A stretch of DNA of 64,000 bases from Hemiscyllium ocellatum (lineage: Eukaryota): NCBI RefSeq assembly GCF_020745735.1, contig NC_083427.1:981211-1045210 (forward strand), given 5' to 3'. This document shows positions 4,278 to 36,520 of the stretch, piece by piece. The translations under genes and the position numbers were made by a program. Below the pieces are notes generated by a model. It was not told the DNA's origin. It did not search any database and saw nothing but the letters and a program-made list of their open reading frames with translations. Every line of letters begins with the position of its first letter. The stretch's first letter is position 1.

Positions 4278-4359
4278 TCACGATTCGTGAGTTAGAATCA
4301 ACGTGATTGGTTTCTCGCTCCACATGATGCAAATGAACAGAGCCTCCCGTGGTTTATTA
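4278..4359 (+). promoter_or_regulatory. Candidate IgNAR V promoter: TCACGA-T-TCGTGA palindrome (4278-4290), ACGTGATTGG CRE-like/inverted CCAAT (4301-4310), E-box CACATG (4321-4326), perfect octamer ATGCAAAT (4327-4334), TATA-like TTTATTA (4353-4359)
   Basis: Motifs read directly 90-170 nt upstream of the leader ATG. The octamer is the established Ig V promoter element; function of the other motifs is inferred. Confidence 0.6.
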
Positions 4360-4449: not shown

Positions 4450-4492
4450 ATGAATATTTTCTTGTTTTCGTGCCTTTTAGCCTGGTTACCAA
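4450..4492 (+). CDS. IgNAR: IgNAR leader exon MNIFLFSCLLAWLP(N)
   Basis: ATG at 4450, hydrophobic signal peptide matching the IgNAR MNIFL..LLA.LPNVFT pattern, phase-1 donor A|GTAAGT at 4493. Confidence 0.95.
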
Positions 4493-4618
4493 GTAAGTAC
4501 TTTTTCTCATAGATGTTCCACACATAAGGACCATGTTCATATTATTGAAATTTCCTTGTCTGAAGCTCTCCCAATGAGAAATAAATGTCATGAATTAAAT
4601 ATATTTTTCTCCGCACAG

Positions 4619-4893
4619 ATGTCTTTACTGCAGGGGTTGAACAAACACCGAGAACGACAACAAAGGAGACAGGCGAATCACTGACCATCAATTGCGTTCT
4701 AAAAGATTCCAGCTGTGCATTGGATAGCACGTACTGGTATTTCACAAAAAAGGGCGCAACAAAGCAGGAGAGTTTATCAATGACTGGACGATACTCGGAA
4801 ACAGTGAACAAGGGCTCAAAGTCCTTTTCTTTGCGAATTCGTGACCTAACAGTTGAAGACAGTGGTACATATCGCTGTGAAGCGTGTAGTTGT
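4619..4893 (+). CDS. IgNAR: IgNAR variable exon (vNAR, type II: extra Cys29 in CDR1)
   Basis: Acceptor CACAG|AT. Translation (N)[91 protein letters not shown] shows canonical C22, W36, C83, the deleted CDR2 typical of vNAR, and ends at the RSS heptamer. Confidence 0.97.
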
Positions 4894-4931
4894 CACAGTA
4901 ATAAACCTGATCTTCCACCAATACAAAAACA
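4894..4931 (+). other. V 3' recombination signal (23-type): CACAGTA - 22 nt - ACAAAAACA
   Basis: Heptamer 4894-4900, spacer 4901-4922, nonamer 4923-4931. Confidence 0.93.
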
Positions 4932-5131: not shown

Positions 5132-5212
5132 TAATTTTGCACTGGGATGTATCACTGTGACAGTTTGGATGACCACAGCAATCGAGAACTCGACGTCTGT
5201 AATACAGAAACT
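5132..5212 (+). other. IgNAR: D1 segment (5160-5173, ACAGTTTGGATGAC) with 5' 12-RSS and 3' 23-RSS
   Basis: 5': TAATTTTGC (weak nonamer) - 12 - CACTGTG (5153-5159). 3': CACAGCA (5174-5180) - 23 - ACAGAAACT (5204-5212). Confidence 0.88.
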
Positions 5213-5401: not shown

Positions 5402-5479
5402 AGTTTTTACAGTGCTGTGTGTGACTGTGTTATTGTACTACCACAGTGACTGTTCTTTGATTCCCTCAATACAGAAACG
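5402..5479 (+). other. IgNAR: D2 segment (5430-5441, TTATTGTACTAC) with 5' 12-RSS and 3' 23-type RSS
   Basis: 5': AGTTTTTAC - 12 - GACTGTG (5423-5429). 3': CACAGTG (5442-5448) - 22 - ACAGAAACG (5471-5479). Frames LLYY / YCT / IVL. Confidence 0.92.
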
Positions 5480-5804
5480 CCCTGGCACATGTGAATCCAC
5501 TGCTCATATAAATTATTACTTGCATGCTTAAGTACCTCATGCTGAAATATTTCTTGCGACTTTTAGGGCCTGGCAACTGCTATCGACCGATTTTCATACT
5601 CCTTTAGCTGATTATTGTGCGACTGTTAAAATCGTATTCACAAAGCAATATAGATAAGAATCCACGATTTGAAGAGTGGCTGAAAATTATAAACGTGACT
5701 GGGAATACAATATATAAAGGGAATGATTTGCGACACAATTGCTGTATCAATCAATCAATATCCTGGAGCATTTGAAGAATCTTCACTTATTTTTGCAACA
5801 ATGG

Positions 5805-5872
5805 ATTTCTTGTGCTGGTGTGAAACAATGTGTAGCTGTAATTACACAGTGACACAAGCCAGAGCACAAACC
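5805..5872 (+). other. IgNAR: D3 segment (5833-5844, TAGCTGTAATTA) with 12-RSS on both sides
   Basis: 5': ATTTCTTGT - 12 - CAATGTG (5826-5832). 3': CACAGTG (5845-5851) - 12 - GCACAAACC (5864-5872). Frame 2 encodes SCN, resembling the SCDY motif common in vNAR CDR3s. Confidence 0.92.
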
Positions 5873-6187
5873 TCTCGGACAGTTGTTCCTTTTTCTGCTT
5901 CTTATTAACATGATTCCATAATCAACTTTCTGTCATGAATGCTGCTTCATAGAGTTAACATCAATTCCAATTCGTTCCATTCTGGAATTGTGTACAAGTT
6001 TCACGTTGATTATAGACCAGCATGCTAGCGTTTCCATTGTCACCCAAACTGGCATTGGAGATAGTGGGGATACGAATGGATATAAATTGTTAATAAATGA
6101 AGATTTGTTAATGCTGTGAACATATATGGAAAATGGGAGAGAGGATTTGTTTTGGTATATTGATTATAGGACGTCTGCTTCACTGAC

Positions 6188-6226
6188 ACTTTTTGTATGG
6201 CGTTGAATGGGAGCTGATGGACTGTG
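6188..6226 (+). other. J 5' 23-RSS: ACTTTTTGT - 23 nt - GACTGTG
   Basis: Nonamer 6188-6196, spacer 6197-6219, heptamer 6220-6226. Confidence 0.92.
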
Positions 6227-6303
6227 ACAACTGCGACGAAGGAAGCGGGACCTTTCTGACAACTGCTGCGAAGGAAGCGGCACCATTCTGACTGTGGAAC
6301 CTG
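6227..6303 (+). CDS. IgNAR: IgNAR J segment, elongated by an internal 32-bp tandem duplication: QLRRRKRDLSDNCCEGSGTILTVEP
   Basis: FR4 motif EGSGTILTVEP, phase-1 donor CCTG|GTAAGT at 6304. Units 6227-6258 and 6259-6290 differ at 4 of 32 nt. Confidence 0.93.
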
Positions 6304-8305
6304 GTAAGTGACCCTCTTGCTACTTATCGCTACGATTTTGCAGTTTAGTAAGAAAAAACGTTTTCTTGTTAAAACAGGCTCAAATGCACAACGTGAGATT
6401 CAGAACATTTTCTAATCGACATGGTTTGCTTGCTAGAAATTATGTGTCTTCCAATTCAAACTCATTTGCAGATTTTGTTTGAGCAAATTTATGCTAATAT
6501 ACAAATATAGACGTAAATGCAGCTGAGAACAAGGCAATACAGAATCTAAATGTTAAACTTGCTTGGCATAGAGTATATAAGATTTTATTTGCGTAGATGA
6601 TGGCTTTAGCTGTTTACGCAGGAAACTGCCCAAGATGTGAAGCTGTACTAAGGCATGTCAGTATGACAATGGTATGCAAAACGTCTAATCTGAACAATTA
6701 ATGCAAGTCTAGATTGAAGAAAACTTTCTGCTAACATTAATGTTTTGGATTGTCTCTAAAATCAATGTTTTGAAAGACAATCCTCATTATTTAACATAAT
6801 TTCGATTACATTAACATTATCACAAAATCAACAAATGGACCGTTCAAATTTGAAGCTGGAACAATTGTAGCTCACCAAACCTGGGCTTGGTCAAGGTTGA
6901 GGTGCTGAATTTCGTCCTCTCCAATTCCACAAAATGGTGAATAACTGTGCACTGATTTAACCAGTGCCCTATTTCAGACAACTAGCGGAGAGTAATTTCA
7001 CTGTAATTTAGCGCGAATCCAGATTATCTGAAATATGCTCTCCCAGATACATGTCCATTTGTGGGTCGAAGTTTGTTGTGTTTAAGATGGTGTCGAATAT
7101 TTGAGAACTTTGAACCCACTACAGCTTTACTGTAAAATGTTTACTTGGCATTAAAGTGGAAATCATGTAGCCCATCTGTACGATATTAATTCTTAGAGTG
7201 GAATAGTCTTGCCTTGCTGATAATATTAATTGCTGTCCAATTTAATTCTTTTAACCACGTCAAGCTAAATAGTGTTTTGCCTTGCCCTCATGGATCCTCA
7301 GGACATCATACCGAACGAAGTAAGATCAATAGGTCGATGTGTGCATGACAGCATTGCTTTTGTGATGCAGTCACCTTGCTGTCGTATTCTTGGACAGGTA
7401 TTTACGAGTGCAGGTGATAATAGGGGAACCCCAAATCAGTAGTTCATAATTGACAACAACGAACAAAAAGGGTCAGAAATCAGGTTTCACCTGACACAGG
7501 GGCAGAGATCAGAAAGTTTGCGATTTAAAAAGAAAACTTGTTTGACCATAACCTGATGTCGTGTGACTTTTGACCTTGTCCACCCAGTTCAGCACAGGCA
7601 CCTCCGAATTTAAAAAATGCAGCTTTGCCGTGGTATCAATCCCACAACAGGAAGCATTCACTCCACTAAACAACTTCTGCAATTTGGGCAATCTCAGACT
7701 AATGTGTGAACACAGAAAATTATTTTAGTGCATCTAGAGGGTGCGTAGAATAGTTTGCCCCGGCAGAAGGTAGTGTTGAGGAAAGTGTTAATCCTTTTAA
7801 CTGTCCATCCCCTGAGATGTGATGGCCCTCAGGTTAAATCACCAACAGTCTTTTCCCTCTCATGAGAGAGCAGCCCCTGTGGTCTTGTAAGAATATGGTG
7901 TCTCAGCCAATAGCTTCATTTTTTTTCAGTTAATAGTTTGTTTGGGCATTCCATGGAATGCTGAGATGATGAAAACCGAACTTCAACTGTATTTAACTGA
8001 AATAGACGACAGAGATTTTCTGGTTTACTTTGACAGTTGTTTTCTCTTACTGTAAACATTGAAAAAAAACCAATTGTTTACTGTCTATGCTAGTTGCTTT
8101 GAAATGAAAAAAAAATCCAAGTTTCCCAGCGGTATGAAGTTAATCTCTACATTAATCACTATCTTCTAGCAAATTAGTGTCGGTGGTTCGAACTTGTTAT
8201 TTCATTACGATGTCTGTCAGTATTTACAGAGTTCTGTCATTTTCATAGTTCTGCCAAATATTAATCACTGTAATGCACCAGCTTGTCTGTGATGCATTCA
8301 TTGTG

Positions 8306-11302: not shown

Positions 11303-14232
11303 TTGGCCTCTGTATATGCTGAATATCAGCATGGACCTCACTAATGGCAATACGAACTAATGTAACTCTGATACTTGCTGGAAGCTATCACAAATTGATG
11401 CTTTCACACAGCCTGACGGAGAAGACATAAGCACATGCGTGAGAACATCAGTGTGCAGGTGGAATCAGTTATTATGTAGGGTATGTTGTTCCCAAGACTG
11501 ATATACATAGTCATTGCCATGGATGTTATTTATAGCATTTGATATCTAAATTTACAGCAAACTGATGCAGTTTGTTGACAGTGTGCTTGCTGGAGAGCAC
11601 GGAACAGTGGCCATGTGTAAAAGATTCAAAGAATGTAATCAACTCAATATTTCACTCGTGGGTTGATAGCTGCTGCATTCGTGTATTATTTCATTATAAA
11701 ATTTCACATGCGATATCTTCTCGTGTTATTGATGACGTGACTGTTGAGTATTGATAGACATTGGGGATTGATTAGAAGTCAGCAATAGACCAGTTCATAA
11801 AGCTAAGAGATTGTTCATTTCGGGCTTTTGTAATAGCAAAACCATGGCTGTCGTTGAACTTGAACAAATGGAAGAGAAAATAAATTCAAAAGTACTGTCT
11901 GACTTTGAGATAAAACGTTGATGGGTGAACAAGAAGTGCAATTTAGGATCTGGGTAGTAGAGTTCTGATCAGATTTACTTGAAAGATTTTGAAGATGGGA
12001 TCCCAGCATTGAGAATTGCAGAATAATCTAGAATACCTTTGAAGAGCTTGGAATTTCTGGTCACAGGTCAGCTGAGGTATTTTCGAGAGAGTAATTGATT
12101 TGATGGAACAAGCAGGTATTCCTGCTGATGACTGTATTAAGTAGTCTGGTGAGTATAACACGGTCACGAGTAAACACCAACTTGTGAAGAGTGTAGTCAG
12201 CTGCATTGGTGTAGAACATATTTGTTCACGTTAGCGATGGAAAGGAATAGATATATAGGCCAGGAGTCATATCTGGGGGAGAAGCAACTTTGATGCGACT
12301 AGGCAAGATTTAGGAAGCATAGGATGGGGAAGGAAACTGCAGAGGACCAGAACAATTGAAATCTGGAGCTTATTCACGGAACAGCTACTGTGTGTCCTTG
12401 TTAATTATATACATGTCAGGCAGGATGGAAGTTGTCGGGCGAGGCAGCCGTGGTTTAGTAACGAATTTGAGTGTCTTGTCAAGACAAAGAAGAAGGCTTA
12501 TGTTGGGATGAGACGTGAAGTCTCAGTTGGAACACTTGCGAGTTACAAGTTAGCCAGGAAAGACACAAAGAGGGAGCTAAGAAGAACCAGGAGAGTACAT
12601 GAGTGGTCATTAGCGGATGGAATGAGGGAAAACTCTGAGGCTATCATTCGGTATATCAGGACGAAAAGATTGACTCGAGTAAGATTAAGGGAAATCAAAG
12701 GTACGAGTGGGAAGTTGTGCGTGAAGTCAGAGGAAATAGAGGAATGGCTAAATGAATCTTGGCCTCTGTATATGCTGAATATCAGCATGGACCTCACTAA
12801 TGGCAATACGAACTAATGTAACTCTGATACTTGCTGGAAGCTATCACAAATTGATGCTTTCACACAGCCTGACGGAGAAGACATAAGCACATGCGTGAGA
12901 ACATCAGTGTGCAGGTGAAATCAGTTATTATGTAGGGAATGTTGTTCCCAAGACTGATATACATAGTCATTGCCATGGATGTTATTTATAGCATTTGATA
13001 TCTAAATTTACAGCAAACTGATGCAGTTTGTTGACAGTGTGCTTGCTGGAGAGCACGGAACAGTGGCCATGTGTAAAAGATTCAAAGAATGTAATCAACT
13101 CAATATTTCACTCGTGGGTTGATAGCTGCTGCATTCGTGTATTATTTCATTATAAAATTTCACATACGATATCTTCTCGTGTTATTGATGACGTGACTGT
13201 TGAGTATTGATAGACATTGGGGATTGATTAGAAGTCAGCAATAGACCACTTCATAAAGAGAAGAGATTGTTCATCTCGGGCTTTTGTAATAGCAAAACCA
13301 TGGCTGTCGTTGAATTTGAACAAATGGAAGAGAAAATAAATTCAAAAGTAATGTCTGACTTTTAGATAAAACGTTGATGGGTGAACAAGAAGTGCAATTT
13401 AGGATCTGGGTAGTAGAGTTCTGATCAGATTTACTTGAAAGAGTTTGAAGATGGGATCCCAGCATTGAGAATTGCAGAATAATCTAGAATACCTTTGAAG
13501 AGCTTGGAATTTCTGGTCACAGGTCAGCTGAGGTATTTTCGAGAGAGTAATTGATTTGATGGAACAAGCAGGTAGTCCTGCTGATGACTGTATTAAGTAG
13601 TCTGGTGACTATAACAAGGTCACGAGTAATAACCAACTTGTGAACAGTGTGGTCAGCTGTTTGCATTGGTGGTAACAGCTTTTGTGTAGAACATATTTGT
13701 TCAGGTGAGCGATGGAAAGGGATAGGTATATAGGCCAGGAGTCATATCTGTGGGAGAAGCAACTTTGATGCGATTAGGCAAAATTTAGGACGCATAGGAT
13801 GGGGAAGGAAACTGCAGAGGACCAGCACAATTGAAATGTGGAGCTTATTCACGGAACAGCTACTGTGTGTCCTTGTTAATTATAGACATGTCAGGCAGGA
13901 TGGAAGTTGTCGGGCGAGGCAGCCGTGGTTTAGTAACGAATTTGAGTCTCATGTCAAGACAAAGAAGGCTTATGTTGGGATGAGACGTGAAGTCTCAGTT
14001 AGAACACTTGCGAGTTACAAGTTAGCCAGGAAAGACACAAACAGGGAGCTAAGAAGAACCAGGATGGTACATGAGAGGTCATTAGCGGATGGAATCAAGG
14101 AAAACCGTGAGGCTATCATTCTGTATATCAGGACTAAAAGAGTGACTCGAGTAAGATTAAGGGCAATCAAAGGTAGGAGTGGGAAGTTGTGCATGGAGTC
14201 AGTGGAAACAGAGGAATAGCTAAATGAATCTT
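11303..14232 (+). repeat. Head-to-tail tandem duplication, unit about 1.46 kb (11303-12758 and 12759-14232)
   Basis: TTGGCCTCTGTATATGCTGAATATCAGC starts at both 11303 and 12759. Each unit is about 930 bp of unassigned DNA plus about 525 bp of CR1. Duplicated ORFs appear in the ORF track (11572/13028, 11815/13271). Confidence 0.95.
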
Positions 14233-15905
14233 TTTTGTCAGTTTTCACACAGGGAAAATACTATGTTGTTGAGGAGAATACAGAGATACAGGTCACTGGC
14301 CTGGATGGGATTGAGGTTCACAAAGAAGAGATGTTTGCAATTCTGGAAAGTTTGAAAATAGATAAGTCCACTGGGTCCGATGGGATTTATCCTCGGATTC
14401 CCTAGGGAGCCGGAGAGGTGATTGAAAAGCTTTTGGCTTTGATCCTGGTGTCTGAATTATCTACAGGAATAGTGCCAGAGGACTGGAAAGTAGCAAATGT
14501 TGTTCCCTTGTTCAAGAAGGTGAGTAAGGTCAACTCTGGTAATTGTAGAGCAGTGAGCATTAGTTCGTTTACGGGTGTAGTGTAGGAAAAGATGGTTAGA
14601 GATAGAATGTATAATTATCTGGAGAGAATGAAGTTCATTAGGGACAGTAGATACGGTTTTGTGAAGAGTAGGACATGTCTCACAAATCTTACTGAGCGCT
14701 TTGAGAAAGTGACCAAACACGTGATTGAGGGTAAAGCGTTTGATGTGTTGTTTTTGGATTTCAGTAAGGTACTTGATAAGGTTCCCACGGCACGCTATTT
14801 CAGAAAATACAGAAGCATATGATTGATGATGATCTAGTGGTTTCCATAAGAAATCGACCAGATGAAAACAGACAGAGGTTGGTGGTTCTGAGAAATATTC
14901 ATACTGGAGTTCAGTTACTAGTCGTGTATCACGAGAATCTGTTTTGGAGGCACTGCTTTTTGTCATTTTGATAAATGACCTGGACGAGGGTGCAGAAGGA
15001 TGGGTTAGTAAGTTTGCGAATGAAACTAAGGTTGGTACAGTTTGGATAATGATTAAGGATGTTGTGGATTACATAGAGACATAGATAAGCTGCTGAGTTG
15101 GGCTGAGAGATGGAAAATGGAATATAATGCGGAAAAGCGTGAGTTGATTCACTTTGGAAGGAGGGACAGGAATGCAGAGCACTGTGTTCATAGCAATATT
15201 CTTGGTAGTGTGGTTGGACAGAGAGATCTCGGTGTCCATGTCTGCACATCTCTGAAAGTTACCAACCAGGTTGATAGATTTGTTAAGAAGGCATACAGTG
15301 TATTAACTTTTATTAGTGGAGGGATTGAGTTTCGGAGCCATGAAATTATGCTGCAGCTGTGTAAAACTCTGGTGCGGCCGCACTAGGAGTACTGTGCAGA
15401 GTTATGATCACTACATTCTAGGAAGGATGGAAAGAGTTCAGAGGAGATTTATTAGAATGTTGCCTGGTATGGAGGGAAGATCTTACGAGGGAAGGCTGAG
15501 GGACTTGAGGCTGTTTTCGTTCCAGAGAAGAAGGTTGAGAAGTGAATTAATTGAGACATATATGATAATCAGAGGGTTAGGCAGGGCGAATAGTGAGAGC
15601 CTTTTTCCAACGGATGGTGACAGCTATCACAGAGGACATAACTTTACATTGCGGAGTGATAGATAAAGGACAGGCTTCAGAGATATTTTCATTATTCAGT
15701 GAATAGTAGGGGCATGAAACAGCCTGCGTGCAACAGTAGTAGAATCGCCAAAGTTAAGGGCATTTAAATGGCCATCGGATAGACATATGAATGAAAATGG
15801 AATAATGTAGTTTAGATGGGCTTCAGAACAGTTTCAGAAGTCGGTGCAACATCAAGAGATGAAGACCCTCTATTGCACTGTAATGTTCCATATTCTATGT
15901 TGTAT
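13709..15905 (+). mobile_element. 5'-truncated CR1 LINE with 3' tail; its first 525 bp are duplicated at 12234-12758
   Basis: YGFVKSRTCLTNLTERFEKVTKHVIEGKAFDVLFLDFSKVLDKVP, FINDLDEG and ERVQRRFIRMLPGMEG motifs, frameshifted. TTCCATATTCTATG tail. Confidence 0.9.
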
Positions 15906-18348: not shown

Positions 18349-18669
18349 GCAGACAGCCTTCTCCACCAGTCATCAGTCTACACTACTCTGCAACTGAAGA
18401 ACAGAGGGCAAACGGATTTCTTCAGCTGATTTGTCTCATCACTGGATACTATCCTGAAGGAACTGTAGTGACCTGGCAGAAGAACGGAAATACCTTAAAT
18501 TCTGGCTTTACAACTACATCTCCAACGAAAACAGCGACCAGTGATTTTAGCTCTACAAGTTTGCTTAAAGTGTCCCTGCAGGAATGGAACAGCGGCTCTG
18601 TGTACATCTGTCAAGTTTCTCATTCTGCTTCCAACAGTAACCAGAGAAAAGAAATTAGTTCAACATCGG
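18349..18669 (+). CDS. IgNAR: IgNAR constant exon C1
   Basis: TTTTAG|GC ... G|GTAAG. GRQPSPPVISLHYSATEEQRANGFLQLICLITGYYPEGTVVTWQKNG...EWNSGSVYICQVSHSASNSNQRKEISSTS; C1-set C-W-C pattern, IgNAR C1-like. Confidence 0.96.
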
Positions 18670-20578: not shown

Positions 20579-20875
20579 AGATAGCTGTATTATTAAGGGA
20601 GCCATTGGTTGAAGAAATCTGGATCAATAAAAGTGCCATTCTGGTTTGCGAAGTGCATTCAACAGTTGCCAGTCAGGTAGTTATCTCTTGGATGGTGGAT
20701 GGAAAGGTGCGGAATGAAGGCGTTCAAATTGAAGCAGCGAACAGAAACCAATATGTGACAATCAGCCGCTTGACTAGCACTGTGGACGAGTGGCAGAGTG
20801 GGGTGGAATACACATGTTCTGCAAAACAGGATCAATCATCACCCGCAGTATCAAAACGAACAAGAATGGCAAGAG
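20579..20875 (+). CDS. IgNAR: IgNAR constant exon C2
   Basis: GACAG|AG ... G|GTTGGT. EIAVLLREPLVEEIWINKSAILVCEVHSTVASQVVISWMVDGKVRNEG...EWQSGVEYTCSAKQDQSSPAVSKRTRMAR. Confidence 0.96.
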
Positions 20876-20955
20876 GTTGGTGACAAGAACTATGTATTTG
20901 TACATGTCATTTTATGAGCGAGGAAATACTAAAAATGTATGTACTTCTATTACAG

Positions 20956-21273
20956 TTAAATCAATGAAGACATATATCCGCCTCCTGCCTCCATCACCAG
21001 AAGAAATTCAGAACAGCAGCTCTGCTACTCTCACATGTTTGCTGAGAGGATTCTATCCTGACAAAATACGCGTTTTCTGGGAGAAAGATGGAGCTTCTGT
21101 CAACGAGAACATCACCAATTTCCCCACTGCTCTGGAACAGGACCTGACCTACAGCGCACGGAGCCTCCTCATTTTACCTGCAGCAGAATGGAAGAGTGGC
21201 GCAAAATACACCTGTACTGCCTCGCATCCACCTTCACAGTCCACTGTGAAAAGGGTCATCAGGAGCCCGAAAG
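20956..21273 (+). CDS. IgNAR: IgNAR constant exon C3
   Basis: 80-nt intron after C2. TACAG|TT ... G|GTAAGG. VKSMKTYIRLLPPSPEEIQNSSSATLTCLLRGFYPDKIRVFWEKDG...EWKSGAKYTCTASHPPSQSTVKRVIRSPK. Confidence 0.96.
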
Positions 21274-21899
21274 GTAAGGACAGTGTTCTAGCAACCATGG
21301 TCAACATTAACACTTTGTGTTAAATATCAACAGAACATGAAATCTTAACTAAACATTCTAAGGTTCCAGCAATTTTAAAATACACAAGATCTTTTGGAAT
21401 GAAACACCTTTAGCACACTGCACATGGCTATGAGGTAAACAGGAGAAGCAAAAACATCCAACAAGCGCATGGTCTCAAGGAGTGTGAAGCCTGCTGATAT
21501 TAAAAAAGGAAGGAACCTCCTGTGGCGCATTGCCCTCTTGTGGCATCCTGGACCAAGATGCTTGTGTTTACTTGCCACCTCCTCCAGAGTTGTGTGTTGA
21601 GTTATCTGAACAGGTTGACGAGAAAAATAGGTTAACTAAAAACTTATGTTAAGAGAAAGGGCTGAAACACAAGATTAATGTTTGAAGGCGTGTTGTCTTT
21701 CGAGAACAATGAAATTTGTTGAGAGGATGATTGTGTCGAAATGATTTTATGTTTTGCTTGCTTCTGTCACTGCTTCATGCTCCTCCTTTGATACCAGCTC
21801 GAGCGGTTGCTGACAGTCAACTGAAAGGTACTTAGAAATGCAAACATTTGTCGACGAGTAGAATTCATGCACATGAATTAACGTGTGCATTGGAAGGAT

Positions 21900-22790
21900 T
21901 ATATTATTCAGCCCTTTGACCATGGAGGTCACATGGAGGGCAGTGACAATGGATGTTGTAGATTACCGATGGACAGAGGTAAGATGCAGCCCTGGATTGT
22001 GGGTGCCAAGTGGAATTTAATGCGGAAAGCTGTGAGGTGGTTCACTCTGGAAATAGTTAAATGAGTCAAGTGTTCAAGGGGCACATGGTGAGATTTTTGG
22101 TGGTGCAGATGAGCAGAGGGATCTCAATGTCCATGTGCAGAGATCCTTGGAAGTTGCCACCCATGTTGATGGAGTTATTAAGAAGACTTACGCTATTTTA
22201 GTTTTGATTGGTAGAGGGAATGAGTTTCGGAACCATGAGTTCATGTTGCCTCTATGAAAAACTCTGGTGCGGCCACAGTTGGAATATTGCGTACAGTTCT
22301 CGTCACCACACTATAGGAAGGATTTGGAAGTTTTGGAAAGGGTTCAAAGGAGATTTACTGGGATGCTGCCTGATACCTCTTATGAGGAAATGCTGATGGA
22401 CTTGAGAATGTTTTCGTCAGAGTGAAGAAGTTTGGGATGTGACTTCATTGAGATATATAAGATAGTCAGAGGCTTAGATAGGGTGGACAATGAGAGCCTT
22501 TATCTTCGATTGGCCATGGACAGCACGCAGAGACATAGCTTTAAATTAAGTGTGATAGACATGGAGGTAGTTCCTTTCCTCACAGAGTAGTAGGGGCATG
22601 GAACGCATTGCCTGCTACAGTACTTGACTCGCAAACTTGAAGGGCATTGACATGGTCATTGGATATGGATATGGACGAGAATGGCATAGGGTCGGTTAGA
22701 TTGGCTTCAGGGTAGTTTTACAGGTCGGGGAAGCATCGAGGCCCGAAGGGCTTATACTGTGTTGTAATGTTCCATTTTCTAGATGATTAA
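21900..22790 (+). mobile_element. CR1 3' fragment
   Basis: RT C-terminal motifs (EQRDL.V.V..SL; RP.LEYCVQF) and a TTCCATTTTCTAG tail. Confidence 0.8.
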
Positions 22791-24171
22791 TTTTATTCTG
22801 ATCAGTTTTTATTTAAAATTCCATTCCCGCCTCTATCACTAAATTGTATTAGCTGAAAGGTTTTGAAAAAGCAAGACTATTTGGATGGAACATAAAATAT
22901 GAACCACCTATTGAGGAAGAAATGGTAATAGAGCGCGACTGAACTCAGGTTGCGAATCGACAAGTTCATGTTAACAGTCTGCTTGATTGAACAGAGATAC
23001 AGCAGAAGAGATGAACTCAGGACAGCCAGAGGAAAAGCAAGGATTTGTAGTGAAGAGTTTGGAATGCGAGACAGTAATATTAATCAACAAGGGAGTAGTT
23101 TTTGCAATATTCTCCCGCCCAGACAACCTGACCGAGGCAATGACATAACAGAGGAACTGCATAAGCTTTGCAATATGCGCACAAAATAGAATTATGCCGT
23201 TCGAACTATAGAATAGACATGGAGCATCATTCCTCACAAATATTATTGAAACTTTCAGAGATAACCCGATCTGTGAATTTTGTAATTGTACTAAAATTTA
23301 AGGTAACAATACAAACAGAACATTCAAGAACCTTCTTTTCATTTGTACTTTACGTTATGCACTAAGAAAGTAACTGTTATTGTACTAAGAGCAACCATTT
23401 TTCCTTTAGCAATCTAGGAGCATGCTTTCCCCTACGTTATGCATTCCTTTAAAATTATCACGATTCTGAACAAGTGTTAGTTTTGTCTATTCCCAACACC
23501 AGAGTTGAGAACTGAAAGACATGTGCTCACAATATTTTAGATTTCTTCACTTAACACTCTTCAAAGATGAGTAATATGAAAAACATCTCTTGAATGGGTC
23601 CTTGACTGAAACTGAATCATGCAGCAAGTATCTTTTATTTTCAAATAAAAACCTGCCGAGGAAATAGGCAGCAAAATCAGTTGAAAGGATGCAATCAATA
23701 AAAATGCAGTTTGATACCAATTTCTCAATTTCTCCATGAGTTTTTCTGACACAGAGCAAATAATGTTAGCTCATGTACAGCGGCCACATATGATATGTGT
23801 TTGCTCGTCTGGGATTGGATTCCGATAAATGCAGTTCATGTGGCAGCAATTGTCTTCTGACATTGGTAACTGCAATAGGTGAAAATGTGCAGCACTCGAA
23901 TGGAGACATTAGGCCTCAGTATACCCAAGGCAGAGCAGTTTCCAAATTGTTCAAGATTATATCGGAAATATTACTGAAGGCTTATCCATAATATTCAGAG
24001 TGAATGCAACCAATACGAAAAGGAGGACACAGCATCTGATTAACTAAGCCTAAACGGTCTCAGAAAACAGATAACAGATCGCAGTAAGTAAAACTATTTC
24101 CAACTCTAGTAGTGTTTTGGAATTGATTTCGATATCGCGGCCTGAAAACATGCATTCTTTTCTGTTTCGAG

Positions 24172-24492
24172 GTGATTGCCGTCAGACAGATATTGTGGTC
24201 CATCTACTGAAACCTCCGTTCCAAGAGATTTGGACGCAAAAGACAGCGACCATTGTGTGTGAAATTGTTTACAGCAACTTAGAAAACATCAACGTTTTCT
24301 GGCAGGTGAATGGGGCTGAAAGAACAAAAGGAGTCAAGACAGAAAATCCTATTTGGAACGGAAGTAAATTCACCATTTTGAGCAAACTTAAAGTCATTGC
24401 GTCAGAGTGGGACAGCGGTGCTGAATATGTTTGCTTGGTAGAAGACAGTGAATTACCAACACCAGAGAAAGCTTCTCTCAAAAAGAAAATTG
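24172..24492 (+). CDS. IgNAR: IgNAR constant exon C4 (N-terminal linker Cys, GDCRQTD)
   Basis: TTTCGAG|GT (unusual GAG acceptor) ... G|GTAAGT. GDCRQTDIVVHLLKPPFQEIWTQKTATIVCEIVYSNLENINVFWQVNG...EWDSGAEYVCLVEDSELPTPEKASLKKKI. Confidence 0.94.
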
Positions 24493-24756
24493 GTAAGTCG
24501 GGATAGTACTGCAATAACAACAAAATAGAATTGATTTCGGAAGTCTGAAATGAAAAAAAAAATATTTCGAAGAAACAGAGCAGGAATGGCAGAATCTATG
24601 GAGAGAAGAATAGGGTGAACGTTTCCAGTCCAGTATGTAACTTCCTAAAAATAGTAATTTATAATATTTTGATATAAGCCTGACTCATACAGTAGTTGAA
24701 TGGAATAAAAAATCCTGTCAAACCATTAATGCGTTCCAGTAAATTCCCCCTAAGTC

Positions 24757-24995
24757 AGCAGCAGAAAGTGGCTCACTGGTTTGCACTGCTGCCTCAAGGC
24801 ACAGGTTCAAATCGAACTCTGTGTAGAGGGTTCCCAAGTTCACGTGGGCTTCCATTGCGAGCTCCAGTTCTCGTCGACTATGTGCAAGTTAGATGGAATG
24901 GCAATGGGGTACGTGCTTTTGTCGGGAGTGGGTCTTGGAGGGATGCTCTTTGGCGTTTGGGTAGGGACTTGTTGGGCCGAATGGCTTGTTAAAAC
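24757..24995 (+). mobile_element. Degenerate V-SINE in the C4-C5 intron
   Basis: Head GTGGCTCACTGGTTTGCACTGCTGCCTCA and 3' GGACTTGTTGGGCCGAATGGC. Confidence 0.75.
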
Positions 24996-25293
24996 GTTAT
25001 GAGGAAATCATGGAAAGCCAATAGCCGTGGCTTCTTCTTTACTGAAAATGAGCGTGAAGAACTGTAAGTGGATGAATCATTTGCACTCCACGAATAGCAA
25101 TCTTTACAAAATGTATGATTGGCCCCAAGATTTAAACCAGCAAAGTAGGGGACATGAAATGCTGTAGCATTCAGAAATATTTGCATAGTCTGACAGATAC
25201 TAAATAATTTATAAACTATATGCATTACTAGCAATGAAATTCTAATGCAGATGTAAGATGGTCTCAGCTAAACAAACATCACTCTCTTTGCAG

Positions 25294-25676
25294 ACGACCA
25301 AATGCGTCTTCCTCAGGTTTATCTCCTGCAGCCATCGACAGACGAGATTGACGCTGAGAATTCAGCGACCCTGATGTGTCTCGTCACCAGCTTTTACCCA
25401 GCTGAGATCTACATTGGCTGGATGGCCAATGACACCCTTTTGGATACCGGGTACCGAACCCAATTGGATAGCCAGGCGGGGAATGGTTCCAACTTCGTGA
25501 CCAGCAGGTTGAGAGTCACAGCGGCGGAATGGAACAATGACACCACTTACTCCTGCTTAGTGGGACACCCATCCCTCAGCCGGGAGTTAATCAGAAGTAC
25601 AAACAAATCTCATGGTAAACCGACAGCAGTCAATGTTTCAGTCGTACTAAGCGATATTGTTAAAACCTGCACATAA
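25294..25676 (+). CDS. IgNAR: IgNAR constant exon C5 plus secretory tailpiece; internal donor at 25615 for the membrane form
   Basis: TTGCAG|AC. DDQMRLPQVYLLQPSTDEIDAENSATLMCLVTSFYPAEIYIGWMAN...YSCLVGHPSLSRELIRSTNKSH-G|GTAAA, then tail GKPTAVNVSVVLSDIVKTCT* with an NVS sequon and penultimate Cys. Confidence 0.96.
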
Positions 25677-34719: not shown

Positions 34720-36520
34720 CTTCCAAGTTGGCAAGGTTTCCAGCCAATGTGAGAAGTTGTTGGCAGTTAGGAACAAGGGAAACTTGAAGACCTTCTACAG
34801 GTATATCAGGAATGCAAGAATGACTGGAGTAAGATTAGGCCAATCAAAGATGACTTTGTAAAGTTGTGTGTGGAATTTGAGGACATAACTGAAGCACTTA
34901 ATGAATACTTTTCGTCAGTTTTCTCGTTGGAAAAGGGAAATGTTTGTGAGAATGCAGACTAGAAGAATTGATGGGATTATGCTTGACAAAGTGGAAGTTT
35001 TAGCAATTTTGGAAGATCTGCAAATAGTTAAGACCCTTGGCCAGGTGGGGTTTATCCTCGAATTCTCGGGGAAACCAATGAACAGGTTGCAGAGCCCTTT
35101 GCTTCGATCATTATGTCACCATTCCTGAAAAGAGTAGTGCCAGAAAACCGGATGATAACAAATGTTGTTCCCTTGTTTAAGAAGGAGAGTCGGGACAACC
35201 CTGATAGTTATAGGCCAGTGAGACTTACAGTGGGTTATAAGAGATACGATATATGATCGTCTGGTAAAGAATGATTTGATTAGGGATAGTCAACACGGTT
35301 TTGCGAACTGTGGGTCATGTCTCACTAACCTTATTGAGATCTTCGAGATGGTGACAAAGCAGATGGATGAAGGTCAAGAGGTTGATGTGACGTATTTGGA
35401 CTTCAGTAAGGCGTTTGATAGGATTCCACGTGGTAGTCTATTGCACAAAATATGGAGTCGGGATTGAAGGTGATTTAACGGTTTTGATCAGAAATCGGCT
35501 GGCTTAAAGAAGATAGAGGATGGTGTTCGATGGGAAATGTTCATACTGGTTCTTGGTTATCAGTGGCATGCAGCAAGGGTCTGGTCTGGAGGCACTGGTG
35601 TTTGTCATTTTTATAAATGATCTGGATGTGGGCTTTAAAGGAGGAGTTAGTAAATTAGCGGATGACACTAAGGTAGGCAGAGTTGTGGTTAGTGCCAAAG
35701 GATGCTGTGGGCTATAGAGGGACACAGTTAAGATGCAGAGCTGGGCTGAGAAGTGTGAAATGGAGATTAATGTGGAAAAAGTGTGAGGTGGTTCACTTCA
35801 AAGAAGTAACGGGTATACAGAGTACTGGGCTTGAGATCAAATGTTTGCCAGTGTAGATGAACCTGGTCGGTGTCCAGGTGCATAAATCCCTGAAAAATGT
35901 CACCCAGTTGGATAGGGCTGTTAAGAAGGCATATGGTGCATTCGCCACAAGATCATGCTTCAGCTGTCCAAGATACTGGTAAGGCTGCACCTGGAATATT
36001 GCATGCAGTGCTGGTCACCGCACTATCAGAAGGATGTTGAAGCTTTGGAAAGGGTTCAGAGGACATTTGCTAGGATGTTTCCTGGTATGGAAAGAAGGTC
36101 TTTTGAAGAAAGGCTGAGGGAACTGAGGCTGTTTCCATGGGAGAGAAGAAAATTGAGAGGTGACTTTATCAAAGTGTATCAGATCATAACATGGTTAGAT
36201 AGGGTGGGCAGTGAGAGCCTTTTTCCTCGGATGGTGATGGCTAACATGAGGGGACTGAGCTTAAACAGAGGGATGTTAGATTTAGAACAAATATTCGGGG
36301 CAGTTTCTTCACTCAGAGATTACGAGGGGCGTGAAATTGCCTGCCTGCAGTAGTAGACTCGACCAAGTTAAGAGCATTTAAATGGGCATTGGGAATACGT
36401 ATAGATAATAATGGAATGGTGTAGGTTTGAAGGGCATCAGAGTATTTTCACAGGTCGGTAAAGCATTGAGGCCCGAAGGGTCTGCACTGCGCTGTAACGT
36501 TCTATGTTCGATGTTCTATG
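34720..36520 (+). mobile_element. 5'-truncated CR1 LINE with TTCTATG tail
   Basis: QHGFANCGSCLTNLIEIFEMVTKQMDEGQEVDVTYLDFSKAFDRIP, FINDLDVG...ADDTK and LEYCMQCWSPHYQKDVEALERVQR. Confidence 0.9.

Follow-up and report, generated by a model that had tools for sequence, protein, structure and literature searches.

A germline 32-bp tandem duplication within the J segment of an intact IgNAR cluster of Hemiscyllium ocellatum

Whether an antigen-receptor J segment can be lengthened by an inherited copy of itself, and whether such a copy would then contribute to unusually long antigen-binding loops, are questions raised by a single IgNAR cluster of Hemiscyllium ocellatum. The DNA analysed (hereafter the window) is a stretch of 64,000 nucleotides, corresponding to forward-strand positions 981,211 to 1,045,210 of contig NC_083427.1 in NCBI RefSeq assembly GCF_020745735.1, and all positions given below are counted from its first letter. 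A prior examination of the letters alone (the sequence-only reading) had proposed that the window contains a germline cassette for ultralong single-domain CDR3s, in the form of a 77-nt J carrying a 32-bp tandem duplication with 4/32 mismatches and kept open by a shift of reading frame.

The J segment occupies positions 6227-6303 of the + strand, the strand on which every cluster feature described here lies, and consists of two 32-nt tandem copies followed by a 13-nt tail. Tandem Repeats Finder (6225-6292, period 32, 2.1 copies, 88% matches, 0 indels) and direct comparison of copy 1 (6227-6258) with copy 2 (6259-6290) both confirmed the proposed architecture, the two copies having 4 mismatches in 32 nt (positions 9, 10, 23 and 27 of the unit). 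Immediately upstream, sequence reading places a recombination signal sequence (RSS; 6188-6226) comprising the nonamer ACTTTTTGT (6188-6196), a 23-bp spacer and the heptamer GACTGTG (6220-6226), and the same RSS also precedes other J paralogs and a J of a related species. Three-frame translation agreed with the sequence-only reading in that the frame from 6228 is free of stops, and reads QLRRRKRDLSDNCCEGSGTILTVEP, while the remaining two frames, including that proper to copy 1, run into TGA; splicing to C1 fixes this sole open frame, the last G of the J being in phase with the C1 exon at 18349. The additional 32 nt of copy 1 are thus read in a shifted frame, as QLRRRKRDLS(D), and copy 2 corresponds to the ordinary J (NCCEGSGTIL), homologous to 42-45-nt J segments found in read contigs. 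The tail (6291-6303) encodes TVEP, ends with the opening base of a split codon, and is followed by the splice donor GTAAGT at 6304-6309. An RSS adjoining the coding end, an open frame with x-G-x-G-T and an in-phase donor, as required of a functional J, are all present, and by every criterion that can be read from the DNA the segment classes as a member of the IgNAR J family. Each unit border carries the same 4-nt microhomology, TGAC (6225-6228, 6257-6260 and 6289-6292). The motif RRRKR (6231-6245) lies within the only open frame of copy 1, and the added peptide is strongly basic. Inspection of the sequence ahead of copy 2 disclosed no usable cryptic RSS (CTTTCTG is devoid of the essential CAC, and no nonamer lies at 12 or 23 bp), and copy 1, being devoid of any GT, contains no alternative splice donor.

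Around the J the IgNAR cluster is complete, in the order V-D1-D2-D3-J-C1 to C5 on the + strand, with no sign of decay. An exact immunoglobulin promoter octamer (ATGCAAAT, 4327-4334) stands upstream of a leader exon (MNIFLFSCLLAWLP, 4450-4492; donor GTAAGT at 4493), and the same leader occurs in the Chiloscyllium punctatum models P0008 and P0019. The V exon (4619-4893) encodes a vNAR domain whose CDR1 contains a Cys and whose last residues are YRCEACSC; its best matches in the PDB were vNARs (E from 1e-43, for 7fbj, to 1e-22), and among the 20 candidates in the protein search, none of which came from transcripts of the organism, its identity to Chiloscyllium plagiosum vNARs was 80-87%, as befits a hemiscylliid, bamboo-shark-like animal. 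Its RSS (4894-4931) combines the heptamer CACAGTA and the nonamer ACAAAAACA with a spacer of 22 rather than 23 bp, as is also drawn for the IgNAR clusters of the bamboo shark in a figure legend (PMC8692893). Three D segments follow, namely D1 (5160-5173; 12-RSS 5132-5159, 23-RSS 5174-5212), D2 (5430-5441; 12-RSS 5402-5429, 23-RSS 5442-5480) and D3 (5833-5844; 12-RSS 5805-5832, 12-RSS 5845-5872). The resultant pattern of V-23, 12-D1-23, 12-D2-23, 12-D3-12 and 23-J, with the V spacer at 22 bp, is that of IgNAR. The 321-nt C1 exon (18349-18669) begins 12 kb downstream of the J, and begins like the sequence downstream of J in cDNA contigs of related species. The C2-C5 exons and the secretory tail (20605-25676) fall within the open frames 20605-20883, 20790-21323, 24117-24506 and 25302-25676, and C4 matches the solved IgNAR constant domain 2mkl ('Novel antigen receptor') with an E value of 1e-52. 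A vNAR-type V, three D segments, and five constant exons with a secretory tail together place the cluster among those of IgNAR, and the prior statement that all exons remain open held for V and for C1-C5. Besides the Cys of CDR1, the V end (CSC, 4885-4893) and the J (CC, 6264-6269) carry Cys codons, as do reading frames of D2 and D3; copy 2 has TGC where the J segments of relatives have the Tyr codons TAT or TAC.

That the duplication might be an artefact of assembly, or of collapse or expansion of the repeat, was a concern of the sequence-only reading, which looked to raw genomic reads for the answer, and short tandem repeats are known to cause such errors. Reads were represented by Logan contigs, from which rare variants are dropped, derived from runs of the same organism. 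Contigs from runs X1, X3, X4 and X5 (two studies, and four samples that are perhaps not from different individuals) span 6199-6414 (6174-6414 in X3) with 0 differences and 0 gaps, and in each of the four the depth of the contig bearing the duplicated J approximates that of the unique upstream contig over 6039-6203. A fifth sample, X25, yielded a 428-nt contig aligned to 6103-6389 with 5 substitutions and 0 gaps; the substitutions listed (6155, 6173 and 6181) are all upstream of the J, and a similar variant flank occurs in X3. The duplicated J, identical in sequence, is thereby present also on a second background diverged by ~1.7%. An un-duplicated allele, which would be recognised by a clean 32-nt skip, was not seen in the contigs of the five runs. 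The artefact explanation is opposed both by the reproduction of the duplication, at the depth of its flank, in independent k-mer contigs of five runs from at least two studies, and by the 4 mismatches between the copies, as a result of which 31-mers tell them apart. It is excluded for practical purposes, and the duplication is a real germline variant in the structure of an IgNAR J.

Comparison with other IgNAR J segments in read contigs of the species and its relatives revealed an ordinary J of 42-45 nt both in this genome and in that of a relative. A paralogous 42-nt J (~NYYGSGTILTVEP), in which the RSS is followed by ACAACT, ACTAC and sequence corresponding to 6273 onward, was recorded in runs X1, X4 and X5 and was absent from X3, a pattern suggesting that an IgNAR cluster, or a J, is present in some samples and missing from others. 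Run X25 added two further J types, one with GGTGGCACCTTTCTG (T-F-L, like copy 1) and the other with TACGACGTTTAC. All four of X1, X3, X4 and X5 also contained a 485-nt contig in which a D3-type 12-RSS and D (TACATGGAGT) are fused directly to J sequence from 6270 onward, and this is the germline-joined D3-J of another cluster. The germline J of related organism C starts with ACAACT followed by ATTATGAAGGA, and fits the YYEGGGTILTVKP ends of published bamboo-shark vNARs. In related organism B (run X13) the contigs covered the upstream flank, and none extended over the J. Run X16, a small, amplicon-like and RNA-labelled run from a related species, contained the germline J flank (RSS plus upstream sequence) at high depth, and it therefore mixes genomic and cDNA products. 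The occurrence of an ordinary 42-45-nt J behind the same RSS, in this genome and in a relative, identifies copy 2 plus the 13-nt tail as the ancestral 45-nt J, to which copy 1 was added. Compared with ordinary hemiscylliid J segments such as that of Chiloscyllium plagiosum (encoding YYEGGGTILTVKP), the present segment has the same 23-RSS, FR4 core E/Y-G-x-G-T-I-L-T-V-x-P and splice phase to C1, and likewise follows three D segments. It differs in its length of 77 rather than 42-45 nt, in that its first 32 nt are a frame-shifted copy of J itself, and in the Cys codons that replace Tyr codons in copy 2.

The additional copy most likely arose by a 32-bp head-to-tail duplication at the TGAC microhomology, through either replication slippage or unequal exchange, the latter possibly between two slightly different J copies. 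The bases that distinguish copy 1 (GAC, ACC TTT CTG) match states present in other J paralogs of the same genome, so that the divergence of 4/32 may reflect exchange between paralogs and is unreliable as a clock. Dating of the event from these differences was therefore rejected, and the earlier opinion that it is not very recent, drawn from the same count, is unsafe. A germline origin through RAG, in place of slippage, would be in keeping with the left boundary of the duplication, which falls in a 4-nt window (6225-6228) that includes the RAG cut site 6226|6227, and with the germline-joined D3-J paralog seen in all four runs. No RAG pathway, however, leads to a clean head-to-tail copy in which both units are untrimmed and free of N or P nucleotides, and the right breakpoint is not on a heptamer border. 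Moreover, an internal 32-nt duplication can begin at only ~14 positions if RSS and donor are both to be left untouched, which gives the coincidence at the left boundary a probability of ~0.07-0.2. As the TGAC microhomology is enough to explain the duplication, a RAG origin is considered very improbable.

With only one functional-looking RSS (6188-6226), and none usable before copy 2, the distance from the RAG cut to FR4 must be 32 nt greater than in an ordinary J; cleavage at 6226/6227 would leave a coding end of 77 nt instead of ~45 nt. On the strength of these signals the duplicated J can probably be rearranged. A guide to subsequent trimming was provided by cDNA contigs of organism C, in which the common FR4 portion is immediately preceded by ACTATTAT and the J is kept to within ~2-3 nt of its 5' end. 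Trimming on so small a scale in a relative implies that most rearrangements of the duplicated-J cluster would keep most of copy 1, and under ordinary trimming in-frame joins would be predicted to gain up to 10-11 residues (QLRRRKRDLSD). These would lie before the usual NCC-EGSGT-ILTVEP, in the C-terminal limb of CDR3. Without trimming, the end of V, the three D segments and the part of the J that runs to the E of EGSGT amount to 96 nt, or 32 codons, and an extended CDR3 of roughly 26-32 residues is to be expected. In a naive bamboo-shark library CDR3s ranged from 6 to 28 residues, half of them having 15-16 (PMC12865624); the addition of ~11 residues to that mode gives ~26-27, inside the recorded range. 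The gain of about 11 J-encoded residues claimed by the sequence-only reading is consequently supported by the single RSS and by the modest trimming of the relative, whereas its description of the product as ultralong is not: the extended loops belong to the upper tail of known vNAR lengths, and even the 32 untrimmed codons fall short of the cattle-type class, with its CDR3s of at least 40 residues and dedicated long segments.

Evidence for selection or use was sought in the open frame itself and in transcribed sequences. The required frame stayed open in 64% of shuffled versions of copy 1 and in 71% of the complete set of tandem duplications that would shift the frame of the ancestral 45-nt J. 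A perfect doubling of copy 2 would have been open from the outset, with the reading QLLRRKRHHSD. With openness at the level of chance, and an exact duplicate already open, nothing points to selection, and that the J is still open, as the sequence-only reading remarked, is uninformative in this respect. Neither V-J nor J-alone words were present in the only RNA-like runs of the organism (X21 and X22, tissue unspecified). Runs X25-X28 were entertained as an RNA source, all three sampled J words being present, and were rejected as DNA, the X25 contig covering intergenic sequence. The RNA or amplicon contigs of two related species ran from 6261-6270 into C1, contained only ordinary J segments, and included none that spanned the border between copies 1 and 2. 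Seven IgNAR clusters are present in the whitespotted bamboo shark, and one V-J pair accounts for 96% of the blood repertoire (PMC8692893). Where one cluster is so dominant in a relative, any other cluster is a priori a minor contributor.

Three readings of the status of the duplicated J were weighed against these results. The one preferred, and judged probable with some reserve, is that of an inherited variant, neutral or mildly deleterious and unselected, in one of many IgNAR clusters; any long, very basic CDR3s that it gave would be a small fraction at most. A point that tells against neutrality is that the duplication is common to a copy diverged by ~1.7%, on which the J is identical, and that no allele lacking it was seen; this combination would be in keeping with a long-lived variant, and so with one that is tolerated or beneficial. 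If benefit were the cause, the duplication would have been maintained for its fixed 11-residue extension, as a cassette for a dedicated class of long-loop vNARs. Such maintenance would accord with the intact cluster and probably rearrangeable J, with the presence of the duplication in all five samples as well as on the diverged background, with the small J trimming of the relative, and with the precedent of cattle, where the short duplication of a gene segment aids a long CDR3 (PMC11447701). It is nevertheless unlikely, given an open frame no more frequent than chance would provide, a predicted loop length within the known vNAR range, and an extension that is a polybasic, low-complexity, shifted-frame peptide and not a designed stalk. 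The absence of V/J words from the RNA-like runs of the organism, and of the duplicated J from the expressed repertoires of two related species, weighs in the same direction.

The opposite possibility is that the segment is a functional dead end, its products being counter-selected or the cluster silent, and that it is tolerated because other clusters would carry the repertoire. Long, positively charged or Arg-rich CDR3s are counter-selected in mammalian B cells, and RRRKR, placed as it is in the sole open frame, matches the minimal furin-type (proprotein-convertase) motif R-X-K/R-R, so that a secreted IgNAR containing it might, if expressed, be cleaved. To the prospect of polyreactive Arg-rich loops and of cleavage may be added that of unpaired Cys, from the codons for it at the end of V, in two of the D segments and in the J, together with the lack of V/J words in the organism's RNA-like runs and the dominance of one cluster in a relative. 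Against this, the octamer, leader, V, RSSs and all C exons are intact and show no decay, the RNA runs are of unspecified tissue, and both furin cleavage and polyreactivity are themselves predictions; a dead end is considered unlikely. The neutral or mildly deleterious variant remains the reading preferred. It is likewise not to be expected, although conceivable, that the duplicated J is in use and defines a minority vNAR class with a germline-fixed, basic extension of ~11 residues containing RRRKR and a CDR3 of ~26-32 residues.

The closest parallel is the cattle IGHV1-7 segment, in which an 8-bp repeat at the V 3' end contributes to ultralong CDR H3 and forms the ascending stalk strand, together with a 148-bp D, the CDR3s having 40-70 residues (PMC11447701). 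Both are short germline tandem duplications within a gene segment that lengthen the germline-encoded CDR3; in cattle the repeat belongs to V and is of demonstrated use, while that of the shark is on the J side and would contribute ~11 residues if used. Germline-joined clusters of IgNAR and other shark immunoglobulins, with pre-joined D-D or D-J (PMC8692893), are similarly inherited changes in the CDR3 segments of single clusters. Those, however, are RAG coding joints from which RSSs have been removed and in which diversity is reduced, whereas the duplicated-J cluster retains every RSS and still requires four rearrangement steps. The supplement to the same study contains no germline J sequences (PMC8692893). 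The suggestion that a J-side route of this kind had not been described is upheld to the extent that no paper was found on a J lengthened by an internal, frame-shifting tandem duplication, an absence that is not proof of novelty. The broader notion of a J-side contribution to length is, by comparison, known in principle from human IGHJ6, a long J that gives several residues to long CDR-H3s; both represent germline J-side length, IGHJ6 by a run of Tyr and the shark J by frame-shifting self-duplication.

Were the segment used, it would be the first J lengthened by frame-shifting self-duplication and kept in a working antigen-receptor cluster, an indication that simple slippage in a J is able to add a new, hard-wired class of CDR3 length to a single-domain antibody, and a natural scaffold idea for long-loop vNAR libraries. 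If unused, it would serve as a small example of the way in which the multi-cluster organisation of shark immunoglobulins tolerates odd variants in single clusters. In either event, software for repertoire analysis that takes the J to be ~45 nt long would place the boundaries of CDR3 and J wrongly in the duplicated-J cluster.

Elsewhere in the window, repeat-derived open reading frames with the motif ERVQRRFxRMxPGMExRSYEERLR were recorded at 12500-15700, within the 12-kb intron between J and C1, and again at 35955-36353. Those of the intron gave no match in Pfam; both the intronic and the downstream frames look like fragments of a retroelement. A strong GC skew is apparent at 12-18 kb of the window.
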